Assembly (NCBI GenBank): GCA_038087875.1
Contig: CM075982.1
Coordinates: 37,882,001-37,946,000 of the forward strand
Reading direction: 5' to 3'
DNA from: Malacoraja senta
Lineage: Eukaryota
Length of the DNA stretch: 64,000 nucleotides
Within the stretch, counting starts at the first letter, position 1; every line of letters begins with the position of its first letter. Position numbers and translations under genes: made by a program. A model generated the notes under the pieces. The model saw nothing but the letters and a program-made list of their open reading frames with translations, was not told the DNA's origin and ran no database searches. Shown in pieces: positions 16,579 to 63,757 of the stretch.

Positions 16579-16723
16579 TTGAAAGAGTGTGGAAGCCAAA
16601 CAACTGTCAGAGTGAGCTGGAGAATTAAAGTGACCAGCGACTAGAAGCTGAGGGTTACCCGAACAGAGGTGTTTCACAAAGCAAGTCACCCAATCTGAGT
16701 TTGATTTCCCCAGTGCATGGATC

Positions 16724-16863
16724 GGGGTGGGAGATTGCAACCTTCACGTGGTCTGCCCTATTTTCGACTAATGCAATCAACCTGGCGTGCACAATCCAAT
16801 AAGATCAAATAGAACAAGTTGTCCTGCAACTTTAGGCTGTGCACGCCATACTCAAGAAGAAGA
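16724..16863 (+). mobile_element. Short retroposon with 5' HDV-like ribozyme fold, copy 1
   Basis: 12-bp TSD AGTGCATGGATC (16712-16723 / 16864-16875); (GAA)n tail; ribozyme fold 16724-16778 with the post-P1 G changed to A. Confidence 0.85.
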
Positions 16864-17736
16864 AGTGCATGGATCAAATCGTAAGTATGCCACCGATTGG
16901 ACAAAGTGCCAATGAATTACTGCTCCACCAAAGGGTAATCCCATAATATGAATTATCTGACCAAAATAACTAGTTTATTTGCATTGACGTCGTTGCGGGA
17001 TTGTGAAGGACTTGCCTCCTAACACGGGAGATTTTTGGATGTCTGCCCCAGCTCTGTGGATACTTCTGAGTGTCAGCGAACATTTTGTATTTGAGGCCAT
17101 CCTGTCCAAGCATGATGGATGCCCACTTTCAGGGCTGAGCAAGCTAGCAATTCTGCAGATACTGAATTTTAACTACAAGGTTAGACAGGAGAAGCTAAGA
17201 AGGCCAAATGGAAGCGTGCAGGATGACTTTTGATCAGCTAAACAGACTAATGAGTCTGTTCTCATTAACAAGCATTTCAAGAACCTGGGATGATTGATTC
17301 ATAGAACAGGAAAAAGATGCAAAGGGATAGCTTTTTGACACAGTGGTTATGATCTGAAATTTGCTTCTGCTACAAGTGGAGGGTGGTGTCAATCAGGGTT
17401 TTCAATGGGGAACTGCATTGCCAATTTACAATGGCCACTCAACCTATTAACCTCCACGTCTCTTGGGATTCAACAGGAAATCTGTACCTTCAGGAAACTT
17501 GCAGTCGCAGAAAGGATCATCAGTAGGACTACAGCGAAAATAATCGATAGCATTTTAGAGAAGCAATAGGGAAGAGAATGGAACAGATTGAACATCCAAG
17601 TTGCTAACATGAACTCAATGGTTGATTGGCCTGTGTCAAAATTATTCTAGGTATCTCACTATCATTCATCCTGTACTAAAGCCCTAATAAAAGACTCAAC
17701 AGATTAAAAATAGACAATAGGTGCAGGAGTAGGCCA

Positions 17737-19575
17737 ATTTTTTGAGGATGTAACTAGGAAAATGGACAAGGGAGAGCCAGTGGATGTAGTGTACCTGGAC
17801 TCCTGCAGGAACGGGGTAGTGATTGGGGATGATCATGGTCACCCCTTACTCCCCATGGAATCTTTCTTCCTCTTTGGAATGAACCAATCCTGCACCTTCT
17901 GGATTATACCCAGAAATACTTGCCATTGTTGTTCCACTGTCATCTCTGCTAGGGTATCTTTCCAGTCAACTTTGGCCAACTCCTCCCTCATGGCTCTATA
18001 GTCCCCTTTGTTCAACTGTAATACCGACACCTCCGATTTACCCTTCTCCCTCTCAAATTGTCGATTAAAACTTATCATATCACTACCTCCTAATACCTCC
18101 TTTACCTCGAGTTCCCTTACCAAATCCAGTTCATTACTCAACACTAAATTCAGAATTGCCTTCTACCTGGTAAGCTCCAGGACAAGCTACTCCATCACGG
18201 AGGCACTCCACAAACTCCCTTTCTTGGGGTCCAGTTCCAACCTGATTTTCCCAGTCTACCTGCAGGTTGAAATCTCCCATAACACCGTAGCATTACCTTT
18301 GCGACATGCCAATTTTAACTCTTGATTCACTTGCACCCTATATGCAAGCAGTTTGGGGGGGCTGTAGATAACTCCCATTAGGGTCGTCTTTAGGGCCTCT
18401 AAAGTGACCAAACCCTTAATAAGGAGATTAGTGGGCAAAATTAGCGGACACGGTATTGGGGTAGAGTGCTGACATGGATAGAAAATTGGTTGGCAGACAG
18501 GAAACAAAGAGTAGGGATTAACGGGTCCCTTTCAGAATGGCAGGCAGTGACTAGTGGGGTACCGCAAGGCTCGGTGCTGGCACCGCAGCTATTTACAATA
18601 TACATCAATGATTTAAATGAAGGGATTCAAAGTAACATTAGCAAATTTGCAGATGACACAAAGCTGGGTGGCAATGTGAACTGTGAGGAGGATGCTATGA
18701 GAATGCAGGTTGACTTGGACAGGTTGGGTGAGTGGGCAGATGCATGGCAGATGCAGTTTAATGTGCATAAATGTGAGGTTAACCACTTTGATAGCAAAAA
18801 CAGGAAGGCAGATTACTATCTAAATGGTGTCAAGTTGGGAAAAGGGGAAGTACAACGGGATCTGGGGGTCCTTGTTCATCAGTCAATGAAAGTAAGCATG
18901 CAGATACAGCAGGCAGTGAAGAAAGCAAATGGCATGTTGGCCTTTATAACAAGAGGAGTTGAGTACAGGAGCAAAGAGGTGCTTCTGCAGTTGTATAGGG
19001 CCCTAGTGAGACCACACCTGGAATATTGTGTGCAGTTTTGGTCCCCTAATTTGAGGAAGGACATTCTTGCTATTCAGGGAGTGCAGCATAGGTTTGCAAG
19101 GTTAATTCCCGGGATGGCGGGACTGTCATATGCTGAGAGAATGGAGCGGCTGGGCTTGTATACTCTGGAGTTTAGAAGGATGAGAGGGGATTGATCTTAT
19201 TGAAACATAAGATTATTAAGGGTTTGGACACGCTAGAGGCAGGAAACATGTTCCTGATGTTGGGGGAATCCAGAACCAGGGGCCACAGTTTAAGAATAAG
19301 GGGTAAGCTATTTAGAACGGAGATGAGGAAACACTTCTTCACACAGAGAGTTGTGAGTCTGTGGAATTCTCTGCCTCAGAGGGCAGTGGGGGACGGCTCT
19401 CTGGATGCTTTCAAGAGAGAGCTAGATAGGGCTCTTAAAGATAGGGGATATCTTTAGGGGATATGGGGAGAAGGCAGGAACGGGGTACTGATTGGGGATG
19501 ATCAGCCATGATCACATTGAATGGCAGTGCTGGCTAGAAGGGACGAATGGCCTATTCCTGCACCTATTGTCTTGT
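17737..19575 (+). mobile_element. CR1 LINE RT region (rearranged; ORF 18466-19194 plus 3' UTR)
   Basis: VDVVYLD, SGVPQGSVL, KFADDTKLGG, RPHLEYCVQFWSP; CR1 3' tail CTATTGTCTTGTCTA. Confidence 0.92.
17836..18390 (-). mobile_element. CR1 endonuclease/linker fragment in inverted orientation
   Basis: Minus ORF with EVLGGSDM, KGDYRAMREELAKVDW, QQWQVF. Confidence 0.8.
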
Positions 19576-21223: not shown

Positions 21224-22459
21224 CAAGATTCAAGATTCAAGAGAGTTTATTGTCATGTGTCCCAGATAGGTCAATGAAATTCTTACTTTGCTTCAGCACA
21301 ACAGAATATAGTAGGCATGAATACAGAACAGATCAGTGTGTCCATATACCATTATATAAATATATACACACATGAATAAATAAACAGATAATGAGCTATT
21401 AATGTTCAGAGTTTTGTTTGAGTTTAGTTTAATAGCCTGATGGCTGTGGGGAAGTAGCTATTCCTGAACCTGGACTTTGCAGTCTTCAGGTTCCTGTACC
21501 TTCTACCTGAAGGTAGCAGGGAGATGAGTGTGTGGCCAGGATGGTGTGGGTCCTTGATGATGATGCCAGCCTTTTTGAGGCAGCGACTGCGATAGATCTC
21601 CTCAATGGTAGGGAGGTCAGAGCCGATGATGGACTGGGCAGTGTTTACTACTTTTTGTAGTCTTTTCAGCTCCTGGGCGCTCAAGTTGCCGAACCAAGCC
21701 ACGATGCAACCGGTCAGCATGCTCTCTACTGTGCACCTGTAGAAGTTAGAGAGAGTCCTCCTTGACAAACTGACTCTCCGTAATCTTCTCAGGAAGTAGA
21801 GGCGCTGATGTGCTTTCTTTATAATTGCATCAGTTTTCTCGGACCAGGAGAGATCTTCAGAAATATGCATGCCCAGGAGTTTGAAGCTCTTGACCCTCTC
21901 TACCATCGACCCGTTGATATAAACGGGACTGTGGGTCCCCATCCTACCCCTTCCAAAGTCCACAATCAGTTCCTTGGTTTTGCTGGTGTTGAGGGCCAGG
22001 TTATTGTGCTGGCACCATATGGTCAGTCGGTTGATCTCTCTTCTATACTCTGACTCATCCTCATCAGTGATACATCCCACAACAGTGGTGTCATCAGCGA
22101 ACTTGATGATGGAGTTCGCACTTTGACCGGCTATGCAGTCATGAGTATAGAGTGAGTACAGCAGGGGCTGAGCACGCAGCCTTGAGGTGCTCCCCTGCTG
22201 TGTTATCGAGGCTGACACATTTCCACCAATACGAACAGTCTGTGGTCTTTGAATGAAGAAGTCGAGGATCCAATTGCAGAGGGATGCGCAGAGACCCAGA
22301 TCTGAGAGCTTGGTAACCAGCTTGGAGGGGATGATTGTATTAAATGCCGAGCTGTAATCAATGAATAACAGCCTGACATATGAGTTTTTGTTGACCAAGT
22401 GGTCCATAGCGGAGTGGATAGCCAGCGAGATCGCATCCACCGTTGATCTGTTGCACCGT
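21224..22459 (-). mobile_element. Rex1/Babar non-LTR retrotransposon, 5'-truncated, relatively young
   Basis: 338-aa frame with [16 protein letters not shown] and [10 protein letters not shown]. The GAPQG motif is scrambled by compensating frameshifts. (TCTTGAA)n tail. Confidence 0.92.
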
Positions 22460-30273: not shown

Positions 30274-30517
30274 CTAATACTCAAATGTAGATGAGAAACT
30301 AACATTGTGGTTTACATTACAAACTGCAGTCCAATATTATCATGCATATTATGACTCAACAACAACCTGATTTATATAATCCCTCTAATATAGTAAAATA
30401 TTCCCCGCACACCAAAGAAAATCCCACACTTAGCCAGAAAGGATGATGACACAGACGACAAAAAGTCTGGTCAAAAAGGGAAAACTGGGACAGTTGGAGA
30501 GGTTTAGGACATAATTC

Positions 30518-30571
30518 GGGGTGGAAGATTGCAACCTTCACGTGGTCTGCCCTGTTTTGACTAATGCAATC
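30518..30571 (+). ncRNA. Minimal HDV-like self-cleaving ribozyme (predicted)
   Basis: P1 GGGGUGG/CUGCCCU (G1-U wobble); P2 GAUUGCA/UGCAAUC; P3 ACC/GGU; L3 UUCACGU; G for P1.1; very short P4; J4/2 CUAA with candidate catalytic C at 30561. Confidence 0.8.
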
Positions 30572-30651
30572 AACTCGACGTGCACAAACGGAAGATCAAA
30601 TAGAACAAGTTGTCCAACAACTTTAGGCTGTGCACGCCACACGAAAGAAGA
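30518..30651 (+). mobile_element. Short retroposon with 5' HDV-like ribozyme fold, copy 2 (intact core)
   Basis: 12-bp TSD AGGACATAATTC (30506-30517 / 30652-30663); (GAA)n tail. Confidence 0.87.
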
Positions 30652-31189
30652 AGGACATAATTCCAGAGCATGGATGAGAGAACTGAAGGTGGAGACACAA
30701 TTTATAGGAGATATGAAAACTAGGAATGTGTGGGTGGCCATTAATGAGGAGGTCAGATATCTCAGAGGGCAGAGAGAAACTTTCAGCCAAGGGAGAGGCG
30801 AAGTCAGGAAGGGAATATGAGATAGCGATGGCAGTTTTAGAATGGAGATGTTGTCGGATATGGAGCCAAATTCTCATAGAACGCATCATATTTTCCGAAA
30901 GTCGCCTTGGGAATATCTGAGGAGCATTTTCCCAGTCTATACAGCAGTCTCTCAGCAGGTCAGGCAGCATGTGTGGAGAGAGTAGTAGTTAATGCTTCAA
31001 GTCCAGTCCAGTCCAGTCCAGGGTCAGAGACAGAGAGAGAAGCGGCGCGATTCCAGCGCCAGCCGCTGGAAGGCGCTAGTTCTCGCAGTCGGACGGATTT
31101 GGAGGTTGCACTGTTTCAATACCGTCCGGTCCGGGTTCTCCCTCCTTTCTCTTCCCCCAGAAGAAGGAGGCGGGGGCCGGAGCCTGGAG

Positions 31190-31357
31190 CCCGTTGCTCA
31201 CGCCAGGCCGGGGCCCGCTGCTCACGCCAGGCCGGGGCTCGCTGCTGACGCCAGGCCGGGGCCCGCTGCTGACGCCAGGCCGGGGCTCGCTGCTGACGCC
31301 AGGCCGGGGCCCGTTGCTGACGCCAGGCCGGGGCTCGCTGCTGACGCCAGGCCGGGG
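31190..31357 (+). repeat. 24-bp GC-rich VNTR, 7 copies
   Basis: Unit CYCGYTGCTSACGCCAGGCCGGGG; units 2-7 alternate CCC/CTC. Confidence 0.95.
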
Positions 31358-31390
31358 CTCGGCAGATAGTGAGTGAGGCGCGACGCCGCC

Positions 31391-31513
31391 ATGGCGACCC
31401 GCAGCCTGACGGAGCCGTTCGTGCTGATGCGCAACCGAGCGGTCCAGAGCCGGCATCTGCAGGCCGAGCAAGTGAGTAGAGAGCCGGATGCGGCCCTGGG
31501 CCACGGCGCTGTG
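31391..31513 (+). CDS. STX16: STX16 exon 1 coding part (alternative donors after 31471 and 31513)
   Basis: MATRSLTEPFVLMRNRAVQSRHLQAEQ|gtgagt or extended by VSREPDAALGHGAV|gtgagt; syntaxin-16 N-peptide with conserved Phe10. Confidence 0.93.
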
Positions 31514-31619
31514 GTGAGTCCCCGTCAGAGTGCCGTGAACTGCGGGAGAGGAGCAGCAACTCGGGCCGGCACGACTGGAGCAGCAATGACTGCCTGACCA
31601 GGGTCTGGGCTTAACATAG

Positions 31620-32480
31620 ACCAATCTATCCACAGACAAAATGTGTAGGAGGGAACTGCAGACGCTGTCTAATCTATTCACACAGTCAAGTTGTGGTTTA
31701 CACGATAGATGCACATCCACTGGGTTATTGAAGATCAATCTATCCAGAATGCCAGAGTTCACAATATCAATGTATCCGCACAGTCAGGCCTGAGGGGTTA
31801 TTATATATCAATATAAATTCAAAGTCAGGGCTCTGATATCATTATATCCACAGTTAACCCCCTGGGGTTACAAGGTAATATATCCGTGGTGACTGTTTTG
31901 GGGTTATTATGGATCAATATATTCACAGTCAGGGCTCTAGGGTTATATATAACTATCCCGAGAGTTAGGCCTCTGGGGCTGTTATACATACATCAGTATA
32001 TTCACTGTGATAAGGGTTTGTAATTATTAAATATCACTATAACCAGGGGGTGGGAGATTGCAACCTTCATGTCGTCTGCCCTGTTTTGATGAATGCAATC
32101 AACCTGTCATGCACGATCAAATAGAATCAAATAGATCAAGTTGTCCTACAACTTTAGGCTGTGCACGCCATACACAAGAAGAAGACTATAACCAGGGGAT
32201 TCTATTGGAGTAGTAAGCTGTCGTCCAGGTGCATTGTGCATGTGTTGTGATATATAGTAAATCCAGGTCACTGACGGTACTGTTGATGTACTGATATATC
32301 ATCCATGTGAAATTCTGTTCCATTCCCAGGGTCAGGGCTCTGGTGTGCCTGTATATCAGTATATCATTGCGTTGGTGCACAGGGGTTATTTTTAATCAAA
32401 GTATGCACAGGAACAATGCACATGGACACGTTGGTACACCAACAGTTCTGTGACCTGGGTTTACTATATATCATTTATGG
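31620..32480 (+). repeat. Degenerate AT-rich tandem repeat in STX16 intron 1
   Basis: Recurrent GGGGTTATTATATATCAATATATTCACAGTCAGGGCTCT-like units. Confidence 0.6.
32047..32184 (+). mobile_element. Short retroposon with 5' HDV-like ribozyme fold, copy 3 (core mutated)
   Basis: TSD ACTATAACCAG (32036-32046 / 32185-32195); L3 UUCAUGU, P3 3' strand CGU, J4/2 UGAA (candidate catalytic C replaced by T). Confidence 0.85.
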
Positions 32481-37534: not shown

Positions 37535-39320
37535 AAGAAGAGAGTGCAGAAAATCAGAACGGAAGTACAAATCTGATAAGCTTCAAATTTCCTTTGAACT
37601 TCTGAAAAACAATCTTCACAAATACCAGGAAGCAGTAAAATCTGCAAGAACAAAATACTTTTCCGCCCTTATTTCCAAAAACGCTCATAACTCCAAGGTC
37701 CTTTTTAGTACCATTACCTCTATCATATGTCCTGCCTCCAGCACCAGCTTAACTGGGTCCCCTGCTAAGTGCGAGGAATTTACTACATTTTTCACCAGCA
37801 AAGTTAACATCAGATCGAATATTTCCCCTCCCATCCGTGACCTGGCTGTCTCATTGGTCTGTTCTTCAAAATTAGACTGTTTCCAACCCGTTATTCTACC
37901 CTCCCTTGTAAAACTTGTCACCACCATGAAACCTACTACCTGCCCCCTCAACATTGTCCCCTCTGCCCTTCTGAAGGATGTCATTACAATAGCCGGTCCC
38001 AGCATCCTCGCCATCTTCAACAGTTCTCTGGCCACTGGCACTGTTCCTACCTGCTTCAAGCATGTGGTGGTCCAGCCCCTCCTGAAAAACCCTAACCTCG
38101 ACCCCACCTTGCCAAGCAACTACAGACCTATTTCAAAACTGCCTTTCCTTTCTAAAGCCCTTCAAAAGGTAATTTTAAGTCAACTTATGCCTTACCTTCA
38201 CCAAAATACTATCGTGGAAAATTTCCAATCAGGTTTCAGGGCCCACCATAGCACAGAGTCTGCCATGTTGAAGGTACATAATGACCTACTTCTCACCATT
38301 GACTCCGGCGACTGTGCAATCCTGTTCCTTCTCGACCTCAGCGCAGCATTTGATACTGTCGACCACACCAGCCTAATTGACCGTCTCCGGTACGGGGTTG
38401 GTATTGATGGCACTGCCCTGAGCTGGTTCATCTCCTACCTCAAAGGTAGGAGTTTCTCTACTAACATAGGCAACTCTTTCTCCTCCCCAGCTAGCCTCTG
38501 CTGCGGGGTTCCACAAGGTTCCATCCTTGGCCCCATTCTCTTCTCCCTGTATATGCTCCCCTTAGGCCAAGTCATTCAAAGGCACGGCATTTCCGTCCAT
38601 GGCTTTGCAGACGATACACAGCTCTATCTCCCCCTGAAGCCCAACAACCGATCAAATAGCAAAAATAAAACAATTCCTCCAGTTTGATGACCTCGAAAAG
38701 ATCATCCACACATTTATCTCCTCCCGCCTCGATTACTACAACACCCTTTACACTGGCATCAGCCAATCTTTCCTGTCCTGCTTGCAACTGGTCCAAAACG
38801 CTGCAGCGAGATTCCTGACGGGCACCCGTAAAAAGGGACCACATCACCCCGATTCTGGCCTCTCCACTGGCTCCCTGTGCGGTTCCGAATAAATTTCAAG
38901 ATCCTTCTTTATGTTTACAAAGCCCTTAACGGGCCTGCCCCCACCTACATCAAAAGTCTGCTTACCCACCACACCACCTCCAGGTCCCTCAGATCGGCCA
39001 ACTTGGGGTTACTGAACATCCCGCGGTCTAGGCATAAGCTCAGGGGCGACCGCGCCTTTGCGGTTGCAGCTCCTAGACTGTGCAACAGCATCCCTCTTCC
39101 CATCAGAACTGCCCCCTCCATCGACTCCTTAAAACTCATCTTTACTCTAAAGCCTTTCTTGACGTCCTCTGAGGGAGGGCTATATGTATGTATTTATGTA
39201 TGTACTTAATCTATGAACCACTCTTGTATAACGTTAGTACCTCCACCAATGTAAAGCACTTTGGTCAACGAGAGTTGTTTTTTAAATGTGCTATAGAAAT
39301 AAAAGTGACTTGACTTGACT
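37535..39320 (+). mobile_element. L2-clade LINE, 3' portion
   Basis: [56 protein letters not shown]; AATAAAA followed by (GACTT)n tail. Confidence 0.93.
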
Positions 39321-50380: not shown

Positions 50381-51697
50381 TCTATATAATTAAAAGTCTA
50401 AACTTGACCACTTCCTGTTTGCACTGTGTATTGATTTTAGAAAATCGCTACCACTTACGGCTGTGATTTTTGGCCATCTTACTCAGAGCCCCCCTCCGCT
50501 CATCAGGTGCCGAGGATTTTCCCATCGATGAAAAATAAAAGAGTTATTAGTATTTAAAAAATGTTGAGATTCTCTCTCCTGTCAATCACTGCCATGAAGG
50601 CTAGGCCCCTTCCGGTGGGAGTGGGGGAGGGACTATAAAATCCAGAAGTGTGGGCGTGGCTCAGTCTCTGCAAGATGGGGGAGGGAGCGGTCATGACTCT
50701 CAGTCTGAGCTGTGTGTAGCTTTATGGTGTTTTATGTGGTTTTATGGTGGTTTCACCCTGCTTGAAATGGTATAAAACTGCATTTGAATTTGGTGGCCTT
50801 GCACCCTGCTTGAAATGGTATGAAACTGCATTTGAATTTGGTGGCCTTGCACCCTGCTTGAAATGGTATGAAACTGCATTTGAATTTGGTGGCCTTGCAC
50901 CCTGCTTGAAATGGTATGAAACTGCATTCGAATTTGGTGGCCTTGCATCTTGCTTGAAATGGTATGAAACTGCATTTGAATTTTGTGACCTTGCTCCCAG
51001 CTTGAAATGGTATGAAACTGCATTTGAATTTGGTGGCCTTGCACCCAGCTTGAAGTGGTATGAAACTGTACTTGAATTTGGTGGTCTTGCATGCACCCTG
51101 CTTCAAGTGATGGGAAACTGCACTTGAATTTGGTGGCCTTGCACCCTGCTTCAAGTGGTAGGAAACGGCACTTGAATTTGGTGGCCTTGCACCCTGCTTG
51201 AAGTGGTAGGAAACTGCACTTGAATTTGGTGGCTTTGCACCCTGCTTGAAGTGGTAGGAAACTGCATTTGAATTTGGTGGCCTTGCACCCTGCTTGAAGT
51301 GGTAGGAAACTGCACTTGAATTGTAATGGCCTTGCACCCTGCTTGAAGTGGTAGGAAACTGCTTTTGAATTTGGTGGCCTGCACTCTGCTTGAAATGGAA
51401 TTTCAAGGAATAGCCGTGAGTCAACTGCCAGCCCACCAGCCATGAGTGAGTGAGCTGCCAGCACACCAGGCTTGAGTGACTGAGCCGCCAGCCCAAGAAT
51501 CCATTTGGCCCACAATGTCCATACTAGCCCTCTGGAAACCAGTCCCTTCAGCCCATAACACCCATACTAGCGCTCCAGAAAGCGCCCCCCCCCCCCACTG
51601 GCCACCAATATTGGAATTGGTGGCGAGGTGGAATATTGCATTGTGTGACCAGCCCTCCCATGTGAACATGGGACCCAATGGGTCCCACTTAGTCTAG
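50381..51697 (+). mobile_element. Non-autonomous Helitron
   Basis: A|TCTATATAATT 5' end; GGGACCCA-A-TGGGTCCC hairpin (51670-51686) then CTAG|T 3' end; inserted between A and T with no TSD. Confidence 0.88.
50755..51400 (+). repeat. 48-bp minisatellite (~13 copies) inside the Helitron
   Basis: Unit CTTGAAATGGTATGAAACTGCATTTGAATTTGGTGGCCTTGCACCCTG. Confidence 0.95.
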
Positions 51698-56713: not shown

Positions 56714-59254
56714 GTAAGCATTCAAAGATGGGGCAATGTGTTGGAGTGTCAGAGGCTGAGGGTAAACCTGAGAGAAGTTTATAAAGTTGTGGGAGGAATA
56801 GATAGGGTAAACAGTGGAATGCTTTTCCCAATTTGGAAATGTCAAATATTACAATAGACAATAGACAATAGACGATTACCTTCAGGTAAGGGGGAGAAAG
56901 TTTAAAGGAGAAGTTTTTTTAGACAGAAAGGTAGGTGCCTGGAATGCATTGATGGTGGTGGAAGCAGATGCAATAGTGGTTTGGGATGCTTTTAGATAGG
57001 CACATGAATATGTAGAGAATGGAGGGATATGGAACATCTGCAGGCAGGATTTGACATCCTATTTAATACGGACATCATAGGCTGAAGTGTCTGTTCCTCC
57101 ACTGTACTGATGTAAGTTCTATGTTCTTTGATTCAAATAACACTTTTTGGATATAATTTACCTCTCGTGTAAAGTGCAAACAATGCTTTCTAAAACAGTA
57201 CGAAGGATGATATTCACTGGTATTTCGTCTCAGAATAGAGGCATGGCCAAATGTCACCTGTAGACTAAAAATTGGCTGCGGTTGATTATGTTTGCCCAAC
57301 TGTTGACAAGCAGGCAAAATGCTTTAGTGAGCTCTTTTATTTAGTTTAACAGTTTCCAAGGTAAGTTGGCATTGGCAAATGCTGTGAAATTCATCTTTGA
57401 TCTGTAGCACTAAACTCATTGCACAGCAGTAGCAGGTGGTATTGTCTGCCACCACTGTGCACCATATTTATTACTGTGGACTGGTGATGAATTTATAGGC
57501 ATCTGAATCCTAAAGCAGACGCCAAATTAATTTGTCCTGTTTTCTTAACTAAAATATTCTGTCTTCATGAGGTATCTTTGACAGTGGTGATTATTTTTTT
57601 GGACAATCATTATAAGTGCCTCTCACCTTTACACCTGTTTTTTGCTCATTATTTTCTATCTTTATTCCCCAGCTGCAGATCTCCGATCTCTTGCTAGTGA
57701 ACCATCATTTAATTTGCCACGAGGCAAGATAATCTAAACAAATTTAATCTCCACTGTTTCGGCCCGAAACGTTACCTATTTCCTTCGCTCCATAGATGCT
57801 GCTGCACCCGCTGAGTTTCTCCAGCATTTTTGTGTACCTAATCTCTCCACTGTTTTGTTTTGTTTATCCACCCATTCATATATGTCTGCTTTGTACCCTC
57901 ACCAAGGCTACTTAAAGTCTGATGTCCAGAAATAAACATACTGCTCCAGCCAATGACAATAACAAATGTTGGAAACGTTCAACAGATCAGGTAGCATCTG
58001 TGGAAAGAGAAACACCTGAAGTCAGAGGTCCCCTTGTCAGAGCTGTTCTGATGAAGGATCTTTCTCTGTTTGTCTCTCGCCTGAGAAACCTCAGTACTTC
58101 ACACCCAGGCAGTTAAAAGGAAAGCCAATCTCATTACACAGGATCCCACCCACCCCCTGCACAAGTCCTTCCAACTTCTGCCATCAGGCCGCCGATATAA
58201 AGTTCCCCTATCTAAGAAAAACATCCACAAAAACTCATTCATACCCATTGCCATAAACAGCTTAAATAAAAAATGAACAATGGACAAATTAACCCTGACG
58301 CACTGTCACTTTACACGTATCCACAACTTTCATCTTGTCTATTTTTACAGTTTTTAATCCTTATACTTACTTTTAAGATCTATACACACGGTGTGTGCTC
58401 GCAGAAATCTGTGTTGTATGACTGCTTATCAGTACATTGTCCTGTTTGTATGTTGAGCCACGCCAAAGAAGATTTTCTGTTACGACAGACAATAAAGTTT
58501 TCTGAATCTGAATCTGAACCTCACCTGTTTCTCTGTTTGCCTCTCGCCTTTCCAGCATTTCCTGTTCTTTGTCTCAGATTTTCAAGCACCAGCAGCTTTT
58601 GGTTTTCACACTAGTCTAGCTTATAAAGGTTCCTCAGGAACGGTGCCCATCCATTCCCTGCAGTGATGCTGCCTGTCTTGCTTTATTTTGCTCATGGTGG
58701 TACCACATTGTTTTTGCTTTTGATGCTCCATTCTTCAGTTTCTAAATCCTATGACTCCAACGTACATAGTTGGGGTTTTGAATAAAATCTGTAGGAGTGA
58801 TGAGTGTTCCAGCCCCACAATTATTGCTGTGTTTTAATAACATCTGGTATGAGGCATGTCTGGAGATTTATCCTTATGGTGAAATCCTCTGATTTCTTAC
58901 TTCTCTGGATTTAGCTGGAGTGGGCAGGAAATATCAGCAAAGGTCTGCATTTTTCATTATCCACTGCCTTCCGTAGATTGTGTATGTAGGTGACAAACGA
59001 CATAATAAGCTTGTCTATGAAGCAGCTTTCAGTAGAATGATTTTCCGACGTATCGCTCAATTGCACATGAGAACAGGTGAGGGATTGCATGACACCATCA
59101 TTTATATCTCGGAAATACTAAGCTTCTCTGGGTGAGCTGGGGATACAGTAAACCCTTGTTGTAATGGACCCCTTTATAACGGATTTTTAATATAGCGGAT
59201 GGATTTGCCAACGCCTCCCTGGCTCGCACCCTCTCCCCAGCCCCGGCTTCTGCC

Positions 59255-59430
59255 GGCACACCAGCCCGCAAGGTGCACCAGCAAGCCTTCCTTCACCCAC
59301 CGCCATGTCCGGTTGACACGGCTGTTCATGCAGCTCGGGTTATAGCCCCTTGGACAGCGCTTTCTTCAGGCTGTCATTACTGACAGGTCGTGCTCGGTCA
59401 CCATGGGGCTCTTTCCCCTCTTACCAGCTG
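59255..59430 (-). pseudogene. Histone H1 globular-domain fragment
   Basis: PMVTEHDLSV / LKKALSKG / NSRVNRTWRWVKEGLLVH with frameshifts. Confidence 0.7.
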
Positions 59431-59470
59431 ACATGAAGGAGGTGGTGGATTGGGAGGAGACAAAGCGCCG

Positions 59471-59623
59471 GGTGAGAGGGAAGGGAGCTCCACGGTGACC
59501 GAATGTGTTCTGTTAGTAGTGGCGGTCTGAGGAAAGCGCTGCTGGCCAGGGGCTACATCGTGAGCTGTAACAACAGCCACTTCAACCAGACTGTGCGGCA
59601 GCTGGTGAAGAAGGGCTCGCTGA
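59471..59623 (+). pseudogene. Histone H1 globular-domain fragment
   Basis: STVTECVLLV / LRKALLARGYIVSCNNSHFNQTVRQLVKKGSL; compare H1 [20 protein letters not shown]...LVxKGTL. Confidence 0.8.
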
Positions 59624-60779
59624 TTGAACAGTGGAGTAGACTTGATGGGCCGAATGGCCTAATTCTGCTCCAATCACTTGTGAAGGGTCCCAATGTCATC
59701 TCTCCATGTTCTCCAGAGATGCTGTCTGACCTGCTGAGTTACTCCAGCACTTTGTGTATTAACCATCATATGGTTCTTTGTTTCAACCATACATAGTGAT
59801 ATAACGTACTTGGTTATAGCGGACAATCGGCAATAACAGACACCATTACCACCCCCACCCACGCCCCATTGTGCGTTACAACAAGGGTCTACTGTACTTG
59901 AAGAAGAATACAAGGGGAGTCTGCGGTGCTCTTTTTTATGACCCTGTCCTGATTCAGCAAATGGATGAAATGGGTTCCAAACAAATAAAATACCTTTGCA
60001 GGAAATATTAAATGTAAATTCTGAAAATGTTAGCAAATTAATGTGCAGAAATGCTTTCAGTCTTAATGAAAGTCACTAACATAAAATATTGACAGTTCTG
60101 TCTCCTCAGAGAATATTTCATATGCCAACAATTCCCAAAATTTCTTCCCTAATTTCACATAGAACATTGAACAGTACAGCACAGGAACGGGCTCATCAAC
60201 CCACAATGTTTGCATCGAATATGATGCCAAGTTATACTGATCTCATCTGCCTGTAAATGATCCATATCCCTCTGTTCCTTGCACCTCCGTGTGTCTATCT
60301 ATAAGCCTCTTAAACGCCACAATAGTATTTGCCTCCACCGCCACCTCTGGCAATGTGTTCCACCACTTTCTGTAAAAAAAATCATGCACTCACATCTCTT
60401 TTAAACTTCCCCCCTCTTATAGCTATGCCCAGTGGTGTTGGGCAATTCCACACTGGAAAAAAGGGTTTTGACCGTCTACCATATCTATGCCTCTCATAAT
60501 TTTATAAACTTCTATCAAATCGCTTCTCAACCTCCGGTTCCAGAGAAAACAGTCCATCTATCCAACCAGTCTCTGTAGCTCTAGCCCTCTAATCCAGGCA
60601 GCAGTTTGGTAAACTACTTCTCCAAAGCCTTCACATCTTCCCCATAATGGGGCGACCAAACTGCATATAATACTCCATATGCGGCCTAACCGAAGTCCTT
60701 TGGAGTTGCATCATCATGTTTTCTTTTGTTTTACCGGCTTGGTCAATTCCAGTAAGAGGATTTTTGTTTCATGCCATAG

Positions 60780-60871
60780 GTTTGAAGAATCGAGAAGAAC
60801 GATCGAAACATTTTTTTGACACATCGGTGCCGCTAATGGATGATGCTGAAGACGACACCCTATATGACAAG
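60780..60871 (+). CDS. STX16: STX16 exon 6
   Basis: ccatag|GT+[30 protein letters not shown]|gtgggc; 92 bp, phase matches exon 5. Confidence 0.96.
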
Positions 60872-61237
60872 GTGGGCCTATAGGTGAATCATTCAGAGTA
60901 CGTACATTCAAATCCCACCAGCGCTGATCAAGTGTTTGAGTTCAGTTTTAAGAAAAATCTGTGAATAAGAAAGCTTATACAGGCACTCCCCGACCTACTT
61001 AATAGGCGTGTTATGTAAACTCACACTTGCGTAAACTATTCACAACAGGTGGTCCCGTTTCCTGAATGATCCGTGTTCTTGAAATGGGAGGATGGCGAGA
61101 ACTTCCCGTCCACCTCATAGATATAAAAGCGTTGCCTGGGTTTCTAGCCTTCTAGTTTTGGCCACTGTCGGTGCGACATTGGGAAGGTGAGTGAGAAAGA
61201 GGGAGGTTTTTGCTGAGTCGCCAACATCTTCCACAAG

Positions 61238-61494
61238 ATGTAGCAGAGCGCCCTTCTTCATCAGCTGCTGCACCGTCCGGTTAACGCGACTGTTGCGGCT
61301 CATGTCGTAGCCCTCGGCTGACAACACTTTCTTTAGGCTGCTGCCACTGAGAGGATGCGCTTGGTCACTGGGGCTCCCTTCCCTCTCACCAGCTGCTGCT
61401 TCTTCCTGTTGGCTATCATTTTATCCACTCTGCTGCTCCGCCGCTTCCCCCCTCCAACACCATCTCCTCCTCCTCCTCCCTTGGTCACCGACAT
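61238..61494 (-). pseudogene. Histone H1-like 5' fragment (ATG, basic N-tail, globular domain)
   Basis: MSVTKGGGGGDGVGGGKRRSSRVDKMIANRKKQQLVRGKGAPVTKRILSVAA, then frameshift to LKKVLSAEGYDMSRNSRVNRTVQQLMKKGALLH. Confidence 0.82.
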
Positions 61495-61509
61495 ATTCCA
61501 AGATGGAAT

Positions 61510-61768
61510 ATGTCGGTGACAGTGGGAGGAGATGACTGTGGAGGGGGGGAAGCGGACAAAGTGACGGCTGACGGGAAGAAGTAGCAGCTGGTGAGAGGAG
61601 AGGGGGCCCCATGATGATTGAGCGCATCATCTCAGTGTCAGTGGCCTGAAGAATGCACTGTCAACCGAGGCCAACAACATGAGCCGTTACAACAGCCGTG
61701 TCAACCGACCGGTGCAGCAGCTGGTGAAGAAGGGCTCACCAGTGCAGACCAGCGGCATCAGTGCCTAG
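61510..61768 (+). pseudogene. Histone H1-like 5' fragment
   Basis: MSVT...GPMMIERIISV / GLKNALSTEANNMSRYNSRVNRPVQQLVKKGSPVQTSGISA. Confidence 0.82.
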
Positions 61769-62160
61769 TTTTAAGGTGAAACAACACAAAATTCTAGAGT
61801 AACTCAACATACGGAATCAGTCAGAAGAAGGGTTCAGACCAAAACATAACCTATCTATGTTCTCCAGCGATGCTGCCTGCTCCACGGAGCATCTAACACT
61901 TTATGTCATTTTGTATAAAAACCAGCATCTGCAGTTCTTTATATCTACCTAGTTTTAATATGATTCCGACTTGCATAAAAATCTGATTTTGGTAAGGGTT
62001 TACGAAACGTAACCTTTACAAAATCGGGGAGTGTCTGTATAAGAAGTGACTGTAAAATGCTCTATGTAAGAATCAACAGGTTTATATTTACCTCAACAAT
62101 TAACTTTTAACTTGGGTAGAATGAGCAAATCTCATCCAATAAGTTTGCACTGCCTTCTGT

Positions 62161-63757
62161 AGATGGCGGCGCCTTGCGGCAGCGGCCACTACAGTCCGTC
62201 TGTCTTTTCTTTTCTTTTTGTCCTGTTAGGTGTATGTTTTTGGTTTTATTTTAATTTTATTTTTAGCTGTGTATATATGGGGGGGCAGGGGGTTTGGGGA
62301 AACTTTTTAATCTCTTCCCTGCACGGGGGACTTGACCTTTTCCCTGTCGAGTCAAGTCAAGTCAAGTCAAGTGAGTTTATTGTCATGTGTCCCTGATAGG
62401 ACAATGAAATTCTTGCTTTGCTTCAGCACAACAGAACATAGTAGGCATTGACTACAAGGCATTCTATAAATATATACACACATGAATCAATATACTGATA
62501 AAGTGCAAATAACAGTTAATTAGCTAATATAGTTCAGTGTTTTATCCGAGCCAGGTTTAATAGCCTGATGGCTGTGGGGAAGTAGCTATTCCTGAACCTG
62601 GTCGTTGCAGTCTTCAGGCTCCTGTACCTTCTACCTGAAGGTAGTAGGGAGATGAGTGTGTGGCCAGGATGGTGTGGGTCCTTGATGATACTGCCAGCCT
62701 TTTTGAGGCAGCGACTGTGATAGATCCCCTCGATGGAAGGGAGGTCAGAGCCGATGATGGACTGGGCAGTGTTTACTACTTTTTGTAGTCTTTTCCTCTC
62801 CAGGGCGCTCAAGTTGCCGAACCAAGCCACGATGCAACCGGTCAGCATGCTCTCTACTGTGCACCTGTAGAAGTTAGAGAGAGTCCTCCTTGACAAACCG
62901 ACTCTCCGTAATCTTCTCAGGAAGTAAAGGCGCTGATGTGCTTTCTTAATAATGGCATCAGTGTTCTCGGACCAGGAAAGATCTTCAGAGATGTGCACGC
63001 CCAGGAATTTGAAGCTCTTGACCCTTTCAACCATCGACCCGTTGATATAAACGGGACTGTGGGTCCCCATCCTCCTCCTTCCAAAGTCAACAGTTTTGCT
63101 GGTGTTGAGGGCCAGGATATTGTGCTGGCACCATATGGACAGGCACCATATCTCCATTGTGCTGGCACCATATCTCCATTGTCGTTGGGGCCTAACATCG
63201 TGGAGCCGGCGGCCTCCAACCGGAATCGACCTGGGGCTCCAGTTGCAGAGCCTGTGGACTCACCATCGCGGACTTCGGACCGCGGAGCGCTGTAGTGGCG
63301 CACGGCCACGACCCAGCTTCGGAGGCTCCGGCTGCAGGCCCTGAGGACGGTAACATCGGGAGCTCGCGAGTCCTTGGTGGGAGACCGCTTTTCGGAGCTC
63401 CCGCCCGAATCGAGCGGTTTAAATCGACCCGGAGCAGGGCCTTACATCGCCTGGCGCGGCTTAAACGGCCGCGGGACTTACCATCGCCCGCCGGGGGCTC
63501 TAACATCAATAACCTTGATCAGCACGATGCAGCAGTTTGACTGCTTGACTGCGGGAGAAGAAGAATAAAGAACAGAGAACAGGGAAGAGATAAGACTTTT
63601 GCCTTTTCACAGTGAGGAGGTGTTTGGAGATTCACTGTGATGGATGTTTGTGTGGAATTATGTCAATTGTGTGATTTGTTTTTTTTGCAGTTCTGACTGC
63701 AGGAACGTAATCTCGTTTGAACGTTGTATGTTTAAATGACAATGAATGGCATCTATC
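62161..63757 (+). mobile_element. GC-rich non-autonomous retroelement interrupted by a Rex1 copy
   Basis: 5' AGATGGCGGCG (YY1-like); homology to the reverse complement of 29405-30273 on both sides of the insertion; AATGACAAT...(ATCT)n tail. Confidence 0.7.
62351..63136 (-). mobile_element. Rex1 3' fragment
   Basis: 207-aa RT C-terminal frame nearly identical to the 21424-22440 copy; (GACTT)n tail. Confidence 0.92.

Follow-up and report, generated by a model that had tools for sequence, protein, structure and literature searches.

The locus poses the question of why a repeat of ~135 nt begins so exactly at the same base, and whether its first 54 nt belong to a known class of self-cleaving RNA. 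The preliminary description of the 64-kb stretch of DNA analysed here (the window) had proposed three + strand copies of a retroposon headed by an HDV-like ribozyme, each with its own target-site duplication (TSD) and (GAA)n tail, and each starting at the predicted G+1 position right after the TSD. Sensitive blastn of the ~135-nt element against the 64-kb window recovered the three + strand copies where they had been placed (16724-16864, 30518-30652 and 32047-32184), and no further copies or fragments on either strand. Pairwise identity among the three is 85-89% (blastn), and identity to the family majority is 96%, 91% and 90% for copies 1, 2 and 3, respectively. Their features are as follows, with positions inside the element counted from its first base, G1.

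16713-16723, + strand: left TSD of copy 1, GTGCATGGATC, repeated at 16865-16875
16724-16778, + strand: HDV-like ribozyme head of copy 1, with U31, A37 replacing G37, and an extra U in the linker
16779-16853, + strand: 3′ domain of copy 1, with an 11-bp stem (16783-16793 with 16838-16848) and the hairpin AAGTTG-N5-CAACTT (16816-16832)
16854-16864, + strand: (GAA)n tail of copy 1
16865-16875, + strand: right TSD of copy 1, GTGCATGGATC
30507-30517, + strand: left TSD of copy 2, GGACATAATTC, repeated at 30653-30663
30518-30571, + strand: complete minimal HDV-like ribozyme head of copy 2, the sole full descriptor match in the window
30572-30643, + strand: 3′ domain of copy 2, stem and hairpin partly decayed, of the subfamily with CGACG in the 5′ arm
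30644-30652, + strand: A/GAA tail of copy 2
30653-30663, + strand: right TSD of copy 2, GGACATAATTC
32036-32046, + strand: left TSD of copy 3, ACTATAACCAG, with up to 3 extra G ambiguous, repeated at 32185-32195
32047-32100, + strand: decayed ribozyme head of copy 3, with L3 CG changed to UG, G27C breaking P3, and C44 changed to U
32101-32184, + strand: 3′ domain and (GAA)n tail of copy 3
32185-32195, + strand: right TSD of copy 3, ACTATAACCAG

The TSDs measure 11-14 bp and are accompanied by a (GAA)n tail in 3/3 copies, and the left TSD directly adjoins G1 in every case, in agreement with the earlier account. In 3/3 copies one further A, which overlaps with the (GAA)n tail, can be added to the TSD, a microhomology expected when reverse transcription primes on the repeat. 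The family-majority sequence contains no intact ORF, with stops in every frame translated by hand. ARAGORN found no tRNA-like fold on the element, by which a tRNA-like head was ruled out, Rfam returned no small-RNA family for it, and no A-box or B-box consensus was seen in the three copies, in line with the preliminary description. Taken as a non-coding, TSD-flanked and microsatellite-tailed retroposon without a Pol III-type head, the element is thus supported. A 727-nt DNA contig from organism F spans 31344-32076 at ~93% identity and enters copy 3 by 30 nt; the insertion of copy 3 is therefore probably older than the split of the two species. Also in the window are a GC-rich tandem array at 31195-31361 (24 bp x 7, 94% matches), a second array at 50754-51398 (48 bp x 13.4, 91% matches), and a region at 59146-62037 with short, decayed ORFs only.

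Copy 2 and the family majority both contain every pair of the nested double pseudoknot, in which P1 crosses P2 and P3 lies inside P1. In copy 2, P1 comprises 7 bp (30518-30524 with 30547-30553, GGGGUGG/CUGCCCU) and is closed by G1·U36, J1/2 has 2 nt, P2 forms 7/7 pairs (30527-30533 with 30565-30571), P3 is ACC/GGU (30534-30536 with 30544-30546) and L3 is UUCACGU (30537-30543). P1.1 consists of C30539 with G30554 (C22-G37) plus a U·U pair. A linker of 6 nt (30555-30560) stands at the place of P4, followed by J4/2 with the letters CUAA (30561-30564), of which 30561 is the candidate catalytic C (C44). The core letters, namely G1·U36, L3 UUCACGU and a J4/2 of C44-U/G-A-A, are found in both copy 2 and the family majority. 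All parts that had been read from the sequence (P1, P2 with 7/7 pairs, P3, L3, G37, J4/2 CUAA) are therefore in copy 2, and the HDV fold is complete there, but it does not extend to the other two copies in full: copy 2 alone in the window qualifies under the full descriptor, which copy 1 misses through the A at position 37 and one extra U, and copy 3 through the loss of the CG of L3, one P3 pair and the catalytic C.

The background for the descriptor was taken from 39.1 Mb of dinucleotide-preserving shuffles of the window, using a loose form, in which only C22 was demanded in L3 and at least 6/7 P2 pairs were required, and a strict form with the full L3. The loose form produced 11 matches in the 39.1 Mb (2.8e-7 per base) and the strict form 0 (<2.6e-8 per base). 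Given these rates, and with the match starting at the first base of the retroposon, the ribozyme motif is not a chance match. The nested MFE structure of the family-majority head is exactly P1+P3; MFE z-scores were rejected as evidence, being uninformative for a pseudoknot fold. Membership of the first 54 nt in the minimal (P4-less) HDV-like ribozyme class is well supported in silico. This class, with drz-Mtgn, was reportedly described by Riccitelli in 2014.

At gathering thresholds, Rfam had no match in the window. Its HDV-like models (RF02682, RF00094, RF00622 and relatives) contain P4, which is absent from this head. In a permissive search of 4227 families, HDV-F-prausnitzii came out on top for both copy 1 and copy 2, with 15.2 bits (start at 16724) and 14.4 bits, respectively, far below the gathering threshold of 44; the alignment covers the full-length model, begins at G1 and skips the model's P4. 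The Rfam CPEB3 model did not match the head. For a reference set, a core-pattern scan of IMG/VR phage contigs was used, giving at least 110 loci, with 72 distinct ribozymes with complete P1 and P2 among the matches listed. As at least 110 phage loci were obtained from one core pattern, reference sequences of the minimal HDV-like class can readily be collected. Covariation in P1 and P2 is abundant among the 72 phage minimal HDV-like ribozymes listed.

A single covariance model is unable to hold a pseudoknot, and two models were therefore built, R1 (P1+P3) and R2 (P2+P3), from a gap-free alignment of 12 phage minimal ribozymes with equal segment lengths. In searches run without filters, 30518-30571 ranked first in the window with both R1 (23.0 bits, E 2e-4) and R2 (24.2 bits, E 8e-4), each time from model position 1 to 55, and copy 1 ranked second (E 0.025 and 0.061, respectively), all E-values being rough. 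R1 and R2 contain the same sequence core and are therefore not independent tests. The head of copy 3 was matched neither by Rfam nor by R1 or R2. An Infernal check with HDV and CPEB3 descriptors, as suggested in the preliminary description, thus succeeded in part: the custom P4-less models detect the head and HDV-F-prausnitzii does so weakly, but there is no match at gathering thresholds and none to CPEB3.

For the family, public reads and contigs of related organisms were aligned to copies 1-3, and the element is present in runs of at least 11 organisms. Likeness to copy 1 ends exactly before G1 in 241 RNA reads and 204 DNA contigs, and likeness to copy 2 in 158 reads and 91 contigs; upstream of G1 the letters agree at only ~0.35, i.e. 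there are many different flanks. As the likeness stops at this base and the upstream flanks differ, the G1 start belongs to the family as a whole, and the proposed check on 5′-end uniformity gave a boundary at G1 across hundreds of reads and contigs of other copies. Relative to single-copy flank, the word depth summed over the head is higher by a factor of ~3e4; taken only as a rough guide, this corresponds to a copy number roughly in the tens of thousands. Pile-ups of reads and contigs also marked two further short repeats of very high copy number, at 30951-30980 and 31636-31667. The latter has one-sided RNA reads (31.7 vs 4.2) and a flanking consensus agreement of 0.87-0.93, and is by that agreement part of a longer repeat.

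The family-majority letters were derived from pooled reads and contigs, rather than from aligned full copies. They include C31, which gives G6-C31, a restored G37 (A in copy 1), and C41, which turns the linker into a UUCG loop closed by U-A. The T at positions 31 and 41 of the window copies is CpG decay, and every difference of the family majority from the window copies improves the fit to the ribozyme. Common non-CpG variants of the head occur only at positions 8 (J1/2, G/A), 38 (linker) and 45 (the free N of J4/2). At position 45, U accounts for ~45%, G for ~45-50% and A for ~10%, with about half of the family reading CGAA; in this subfamily the catalytic C lies in a CpG, with the change of C44 to U in copy 3 as the outcome. 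The helix positions of the head show no variation except CpG transitions at 8-15%. Compensatory changes on both sides of a helix were not seen in the pooled variant tables, which carry no linkage, and the pattern of the head is therefore one of conservation, not covariation. With few source genes in the family, such helix conservation is indistinguishable from conservation of the sequence as such.

The remainder of the element, ~nt 55-135, consists of a stem enclosing an inner hairpin, then a short 3′ end and the (GAA)n. In copy 1 this tail has an MFE of -24.2 kcal/mol and folds as previously described, with an 11-bp stem around the AAGTTG-N5-CAACTT hairpin. Across the family, 3/5 loop positions of the inner hairpin vary at 8% or more, and 0/12 stem positions do; the outer pairs of the long stem are lost in one subfamily. 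DNA depth over the tail is ~1.7x the head depth. In six short contigs from two organisms (five from X16, one from X15), the sequence that precedes the last ~38 nt is a different one; a second element with this 3′ end exists. This alternative upstream sequence occurs in two diverged versions and translates as L-x-W-x-S-x-L-x-LQL-stop, with the stop inside CAACTTTAGG. Read from 30-nt consensus strings, the tail-sharing sequence resembles the C-terminal end of a LINE ORF to which a very short 3′ UTR is attached, and would be a candidate partner.

The alternative upstream sequence is absent from the window, as is any LINE with this tail, and searches with Rfam, R1 and R2 found no LINE 5′ end with an HDV-like motif there. 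A 21-kb stingray locus contains no copy of head or tail, and metagenome scans gave 0 matches for the ribozyme core and 0 for the tail. The LINE fragments at 18466-19194, 21424-22440, 37854-38687 and 62534-63157 were considered as partners and rejected, with no match to the tail where 3′ ends could be read; the 3′ ends read for two L2-like fragments are (TTGAATC)n and (TTGAC)n, unlike this tail. These two L2-like LINE 3′ fragments (21224-22440 and 62346-63157, both on the - strand) encode RVT_1 and an ALKBH8_N-type C-terminal domain, and have a common 3′ UTR ending in ...GGGACACATGACAATAAACTC, followed by (TTGAATC)n or (TTGAC)n. The database protein closest to the L2-like fragments is 86% identical and lies on an ENA metagenome contig, and against a protein collection the relatives of the L2-like RT of the window are mostly teleost. 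An RTE-clade partner, as had been guessed, is unsupported, there being no LINE with this tail in the window. RTE insertions have the signature that the TSD begins ~10 nt after a T stretch (PMC6007223).

We consider it probable that the repeat is a bipartite non-autonomous LINE derivative of the R2-SIDE/NARTc kind, of ~135 nt, in which a minimal ribozyme head is combined with a LINE-recognition tail. This reading takes up the observed anatomy, the family-wide G1 boundary, the class match of the head and the second element with the same last ~38 nt, and would add cleavage, read-through transcription and the identity of the partner. The element would have no promoter of its own, and a source copy would be transcribed within a longer host or read-through RNA, from which the ribozyme would cut immediately 5′ of G1 and so set the 5′ end of the element. 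An autonomous LINE with the same 3′ end would then recognise the tail through its reverse transcriptase, nick the target, prime on the GAA repeat and copy the RNA as far as G1, the expected product being full-length inserts between duplications of 11-14 bp. Self-cleavage at G1 is in this scheme a prediction from the letters of the head.

Elements of this build are known from other hosts. Ribozyme-headed non-autonomous LINE derivatives, including RTE derivatives, are established (PMC3414825, PMC5786205, PMC6765202), some non-autonomous SINEs use HDV-like ribozymes according to a review (PMC6765202), and RTE, Ingi, Vingi and R2 are the only clades known to make such bipartite elements (Kojima, 2018). 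The R2 SIDEs and R2/R1 hybrid SIDEs of Drosophila (Eickbush and Eickbush, 2012; PMC3414825) offer one comparison. The R2 SIDEs are likewise short and non-coding, carry a 5′ HDV-like ribozyme and a LINE 3′ end, and are mobilised in trans by target-primed reverse transcription, and the hybrids demonstrate that ribozyme and tail are able to come from different LINEs (PMC3414825). R2 SIDEs are, however, rare, site-specific in rDNA and cut from a Pol I co-transcript by a full-size R2 ribozyme of ~180 nt, whereas the element of the window is dispersed over varied target sites, has a 54-nt P4-less ribozyme and amounts to roughly tens of thousands of copies. NARTc, RIME and SIDER, which are bipartite, non-autonomous and derived from L1Tc/ingi in trypanosomatids, are also dispersed, abundant and of head-plus-tail build (PMC3185411, PMC4035085, PMC5786205), and there too an HDV-like ribozyme, in the first ~77 nt, frees the element from longer co-transcripts. 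They differ in their protist hosts with polycistronic transcription, in that Pr77 is also a promoter, and in a larger ribozyme and a poly(A) tail; the present element has a vertebrate host, no known promoter function and a tail of structured stem plus (GAA)n.

Concerning the head itself, Caudoviricetes phages harbour ~99% of the known minimal HDV-like ribozymes, which lack the P4 domain and frequently lie 3′ of tRNAs, and practically none turned up when human, mouse and protist genomes were searched (PMC10879173). These phage minimal/theta ribozymes share its layout, with a P1 of 6-7 bp, a J1/2 of 1-3 nt, a P2 of 7 bp, P3 ACC/GGU, a 7-nt L3 ending in CGY, a linker of 5-7 nt and CUAA (PMC10879173). 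Their P1.1 is usually CC/GG, whereas the core of the element has a P1.1 of one C-G plus U·U, next to L3 UUCACGU and a J4/2 of CUAA or CGAA, and stands in a eukaryotic retroposon. The mammalian CPEB3 ribozyme is alike in U20, C22, A23 and G25 of L3 and in a P1.1 of one G-C and one U·U (PMC4836649), as well as in a 4-nt J4/2 that opens with the catalytic C, the form CGAA being present in about half of the element family; it differs in being single-copy and intronic and in having a full P4 hairpin. The core CCUUCACGUGG agrees in 9/11 letters with the most conserved motif of R2 ribozymes, CCUCCUCGUGG (PMC5035012). A small self-cleaving ribozyme on a non-autonomous retroposon is also known from Schistosoma, in the hammerhead SINE and the twister variants in Perere-3/SR3, where the ribozyme processes the transposition intermediate (PMC8501958), although the ribozyme classes are others and the SINE has a Pol III-type head.

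RNA evidence on cutting was taken from one raw polyA RNA run, in which read starts did not pile up at G1 (30518, 16724) at a threshold of ~1/5 of the local depth, and most polyA reads over G1 continue into flanking sequence. The run is stranded-looking, with strands inseparable at the boundary, and mixes intact and decayed copies, most genomic copies being decayed. From the missing pile-up and the run-through we conclude that the bulk of transcribed copies are uncut, antisense or decayed; the reads argue against efficient cutting of bulk transcripts and have no bearing on intact source copies. In RNA run X22, first-mate reads on the + strand exceed those on the - strand by 1.4-2.2 to 1 over 16724-16865 and 30518-30652 (1.4-fold over the head, ~2.1-fold over the tail). 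Assuming a library of the usual dUTP type, RNAs that contain the antisense strand predominate, as either selection against sense inserts or self-cleavage would produce. Candidate causes of the + excess are an antisense bias of the transcribed copies, loss of sense RNA and extra tail-only elements.

The missing excess of RNA 5′ ends at G1 would also fit a head that derives from the ribozyme at the 5′ end of a parent LINE and no longer cuts, or does not mainly cut, and that is kept for LINE-protein binding, for second-strand or 5′-junction formation, or as an internal promoter. Such roles have parallels in the R2 protein, which binds the ribozyme pseudoknot (PMC6765202), and in Pr77 of L1Tc, which is both promoter and ribozyme (PMC3383444). 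Nevertheless, the catalytic-core letters C44, C22-G37, U20/G25 and G1·U36 are all kept in the family majority, which weighs against a pure binding site, as such a site would not need them, and the insert boundary lies exactly at G1. We regard a non-cutting head as improbable, though it fares best among the alternatives.

An ordinary SINE, transcribed by Pol III or another polymerase from an unrecognised internal promoter or small-RNA head, with G1 as transcription start and a coincidental HDV-like fit, would agree with RNA reads that carry no cleavage signal, and a defined transcription start also yields uniform 5′ ends. Against this stand the absence of a tRNA-like fold and of any visible A-box or B-box consensus, a chance rate of the motif of <=3e-7 at a given base, and the phage-ribozyme models, which rank the head first and align it end to end, and we hold this explanation to be very improbable. 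Hardly credible, finally, is a head made from a coding fragment of a LINE endonuclease (GDFN region), fused to the tail of a LINE through an internal deletion and devoid of RNA function: positions 5-32 of the head share 82% identity across 28 nt with 18252-18279 of the - strand (MGDFNLQVDW, E 0.02), but this likeness is short, borderline, does not extend and was judged probably due to chance, the LINE in question is L2-like with a different tail, and P2, J4/2 and the uniform G1 start are left unexplained.

The bipartite LINE derivative with a minimal ribozyme head thus remains the preferred reading. As for its novelty, no paper on HDV-like ribozymes in shark, elasmobranch or other cartilaginous-fish repeats was found in a literature search (Repbase and Dfam lying outside this search), nor one describing a dispersed, very high-copy ribozyme-headed LINE derivative in a vertebrate. 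The novelty claimed beforehand holds for cartilaginous fish to that extent, but was framed too broadly, as ribozyme-headed LINE derivatives were already established; new here are the host, the abundance, the very small size and a P4-less ribozyme in a eukaryote. A far-reaching version of the same reading, which we consider doubtful, would have the P4-less HDV-like ribozyme catalytically active in a vertebrate and placed at the head of the smallest known head-plus-tail retroposon, in tens of thousands of copies, with a Vingi/Ingi-type LINE carrying a CPEB3-type ribozyme as partner, which would tie the origin of mammalian CPEB3 to this lineage, and with intact sense copies cutting host pre-mRNAs genome-wide.

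For annotation, elements of this kind are easily mislabelled as SINEs with a head of unknown origin. If the head cleaves, the family would represent the largest natural collection of minimal HDV-like ribozymes in an animal genome and a compact natural 5′-processing module for retroelement RNAs, and it may offer a clue to the source of the CPEB3-type core. Intact sense copies within genes could, in addition, cut the transcripts of their host.
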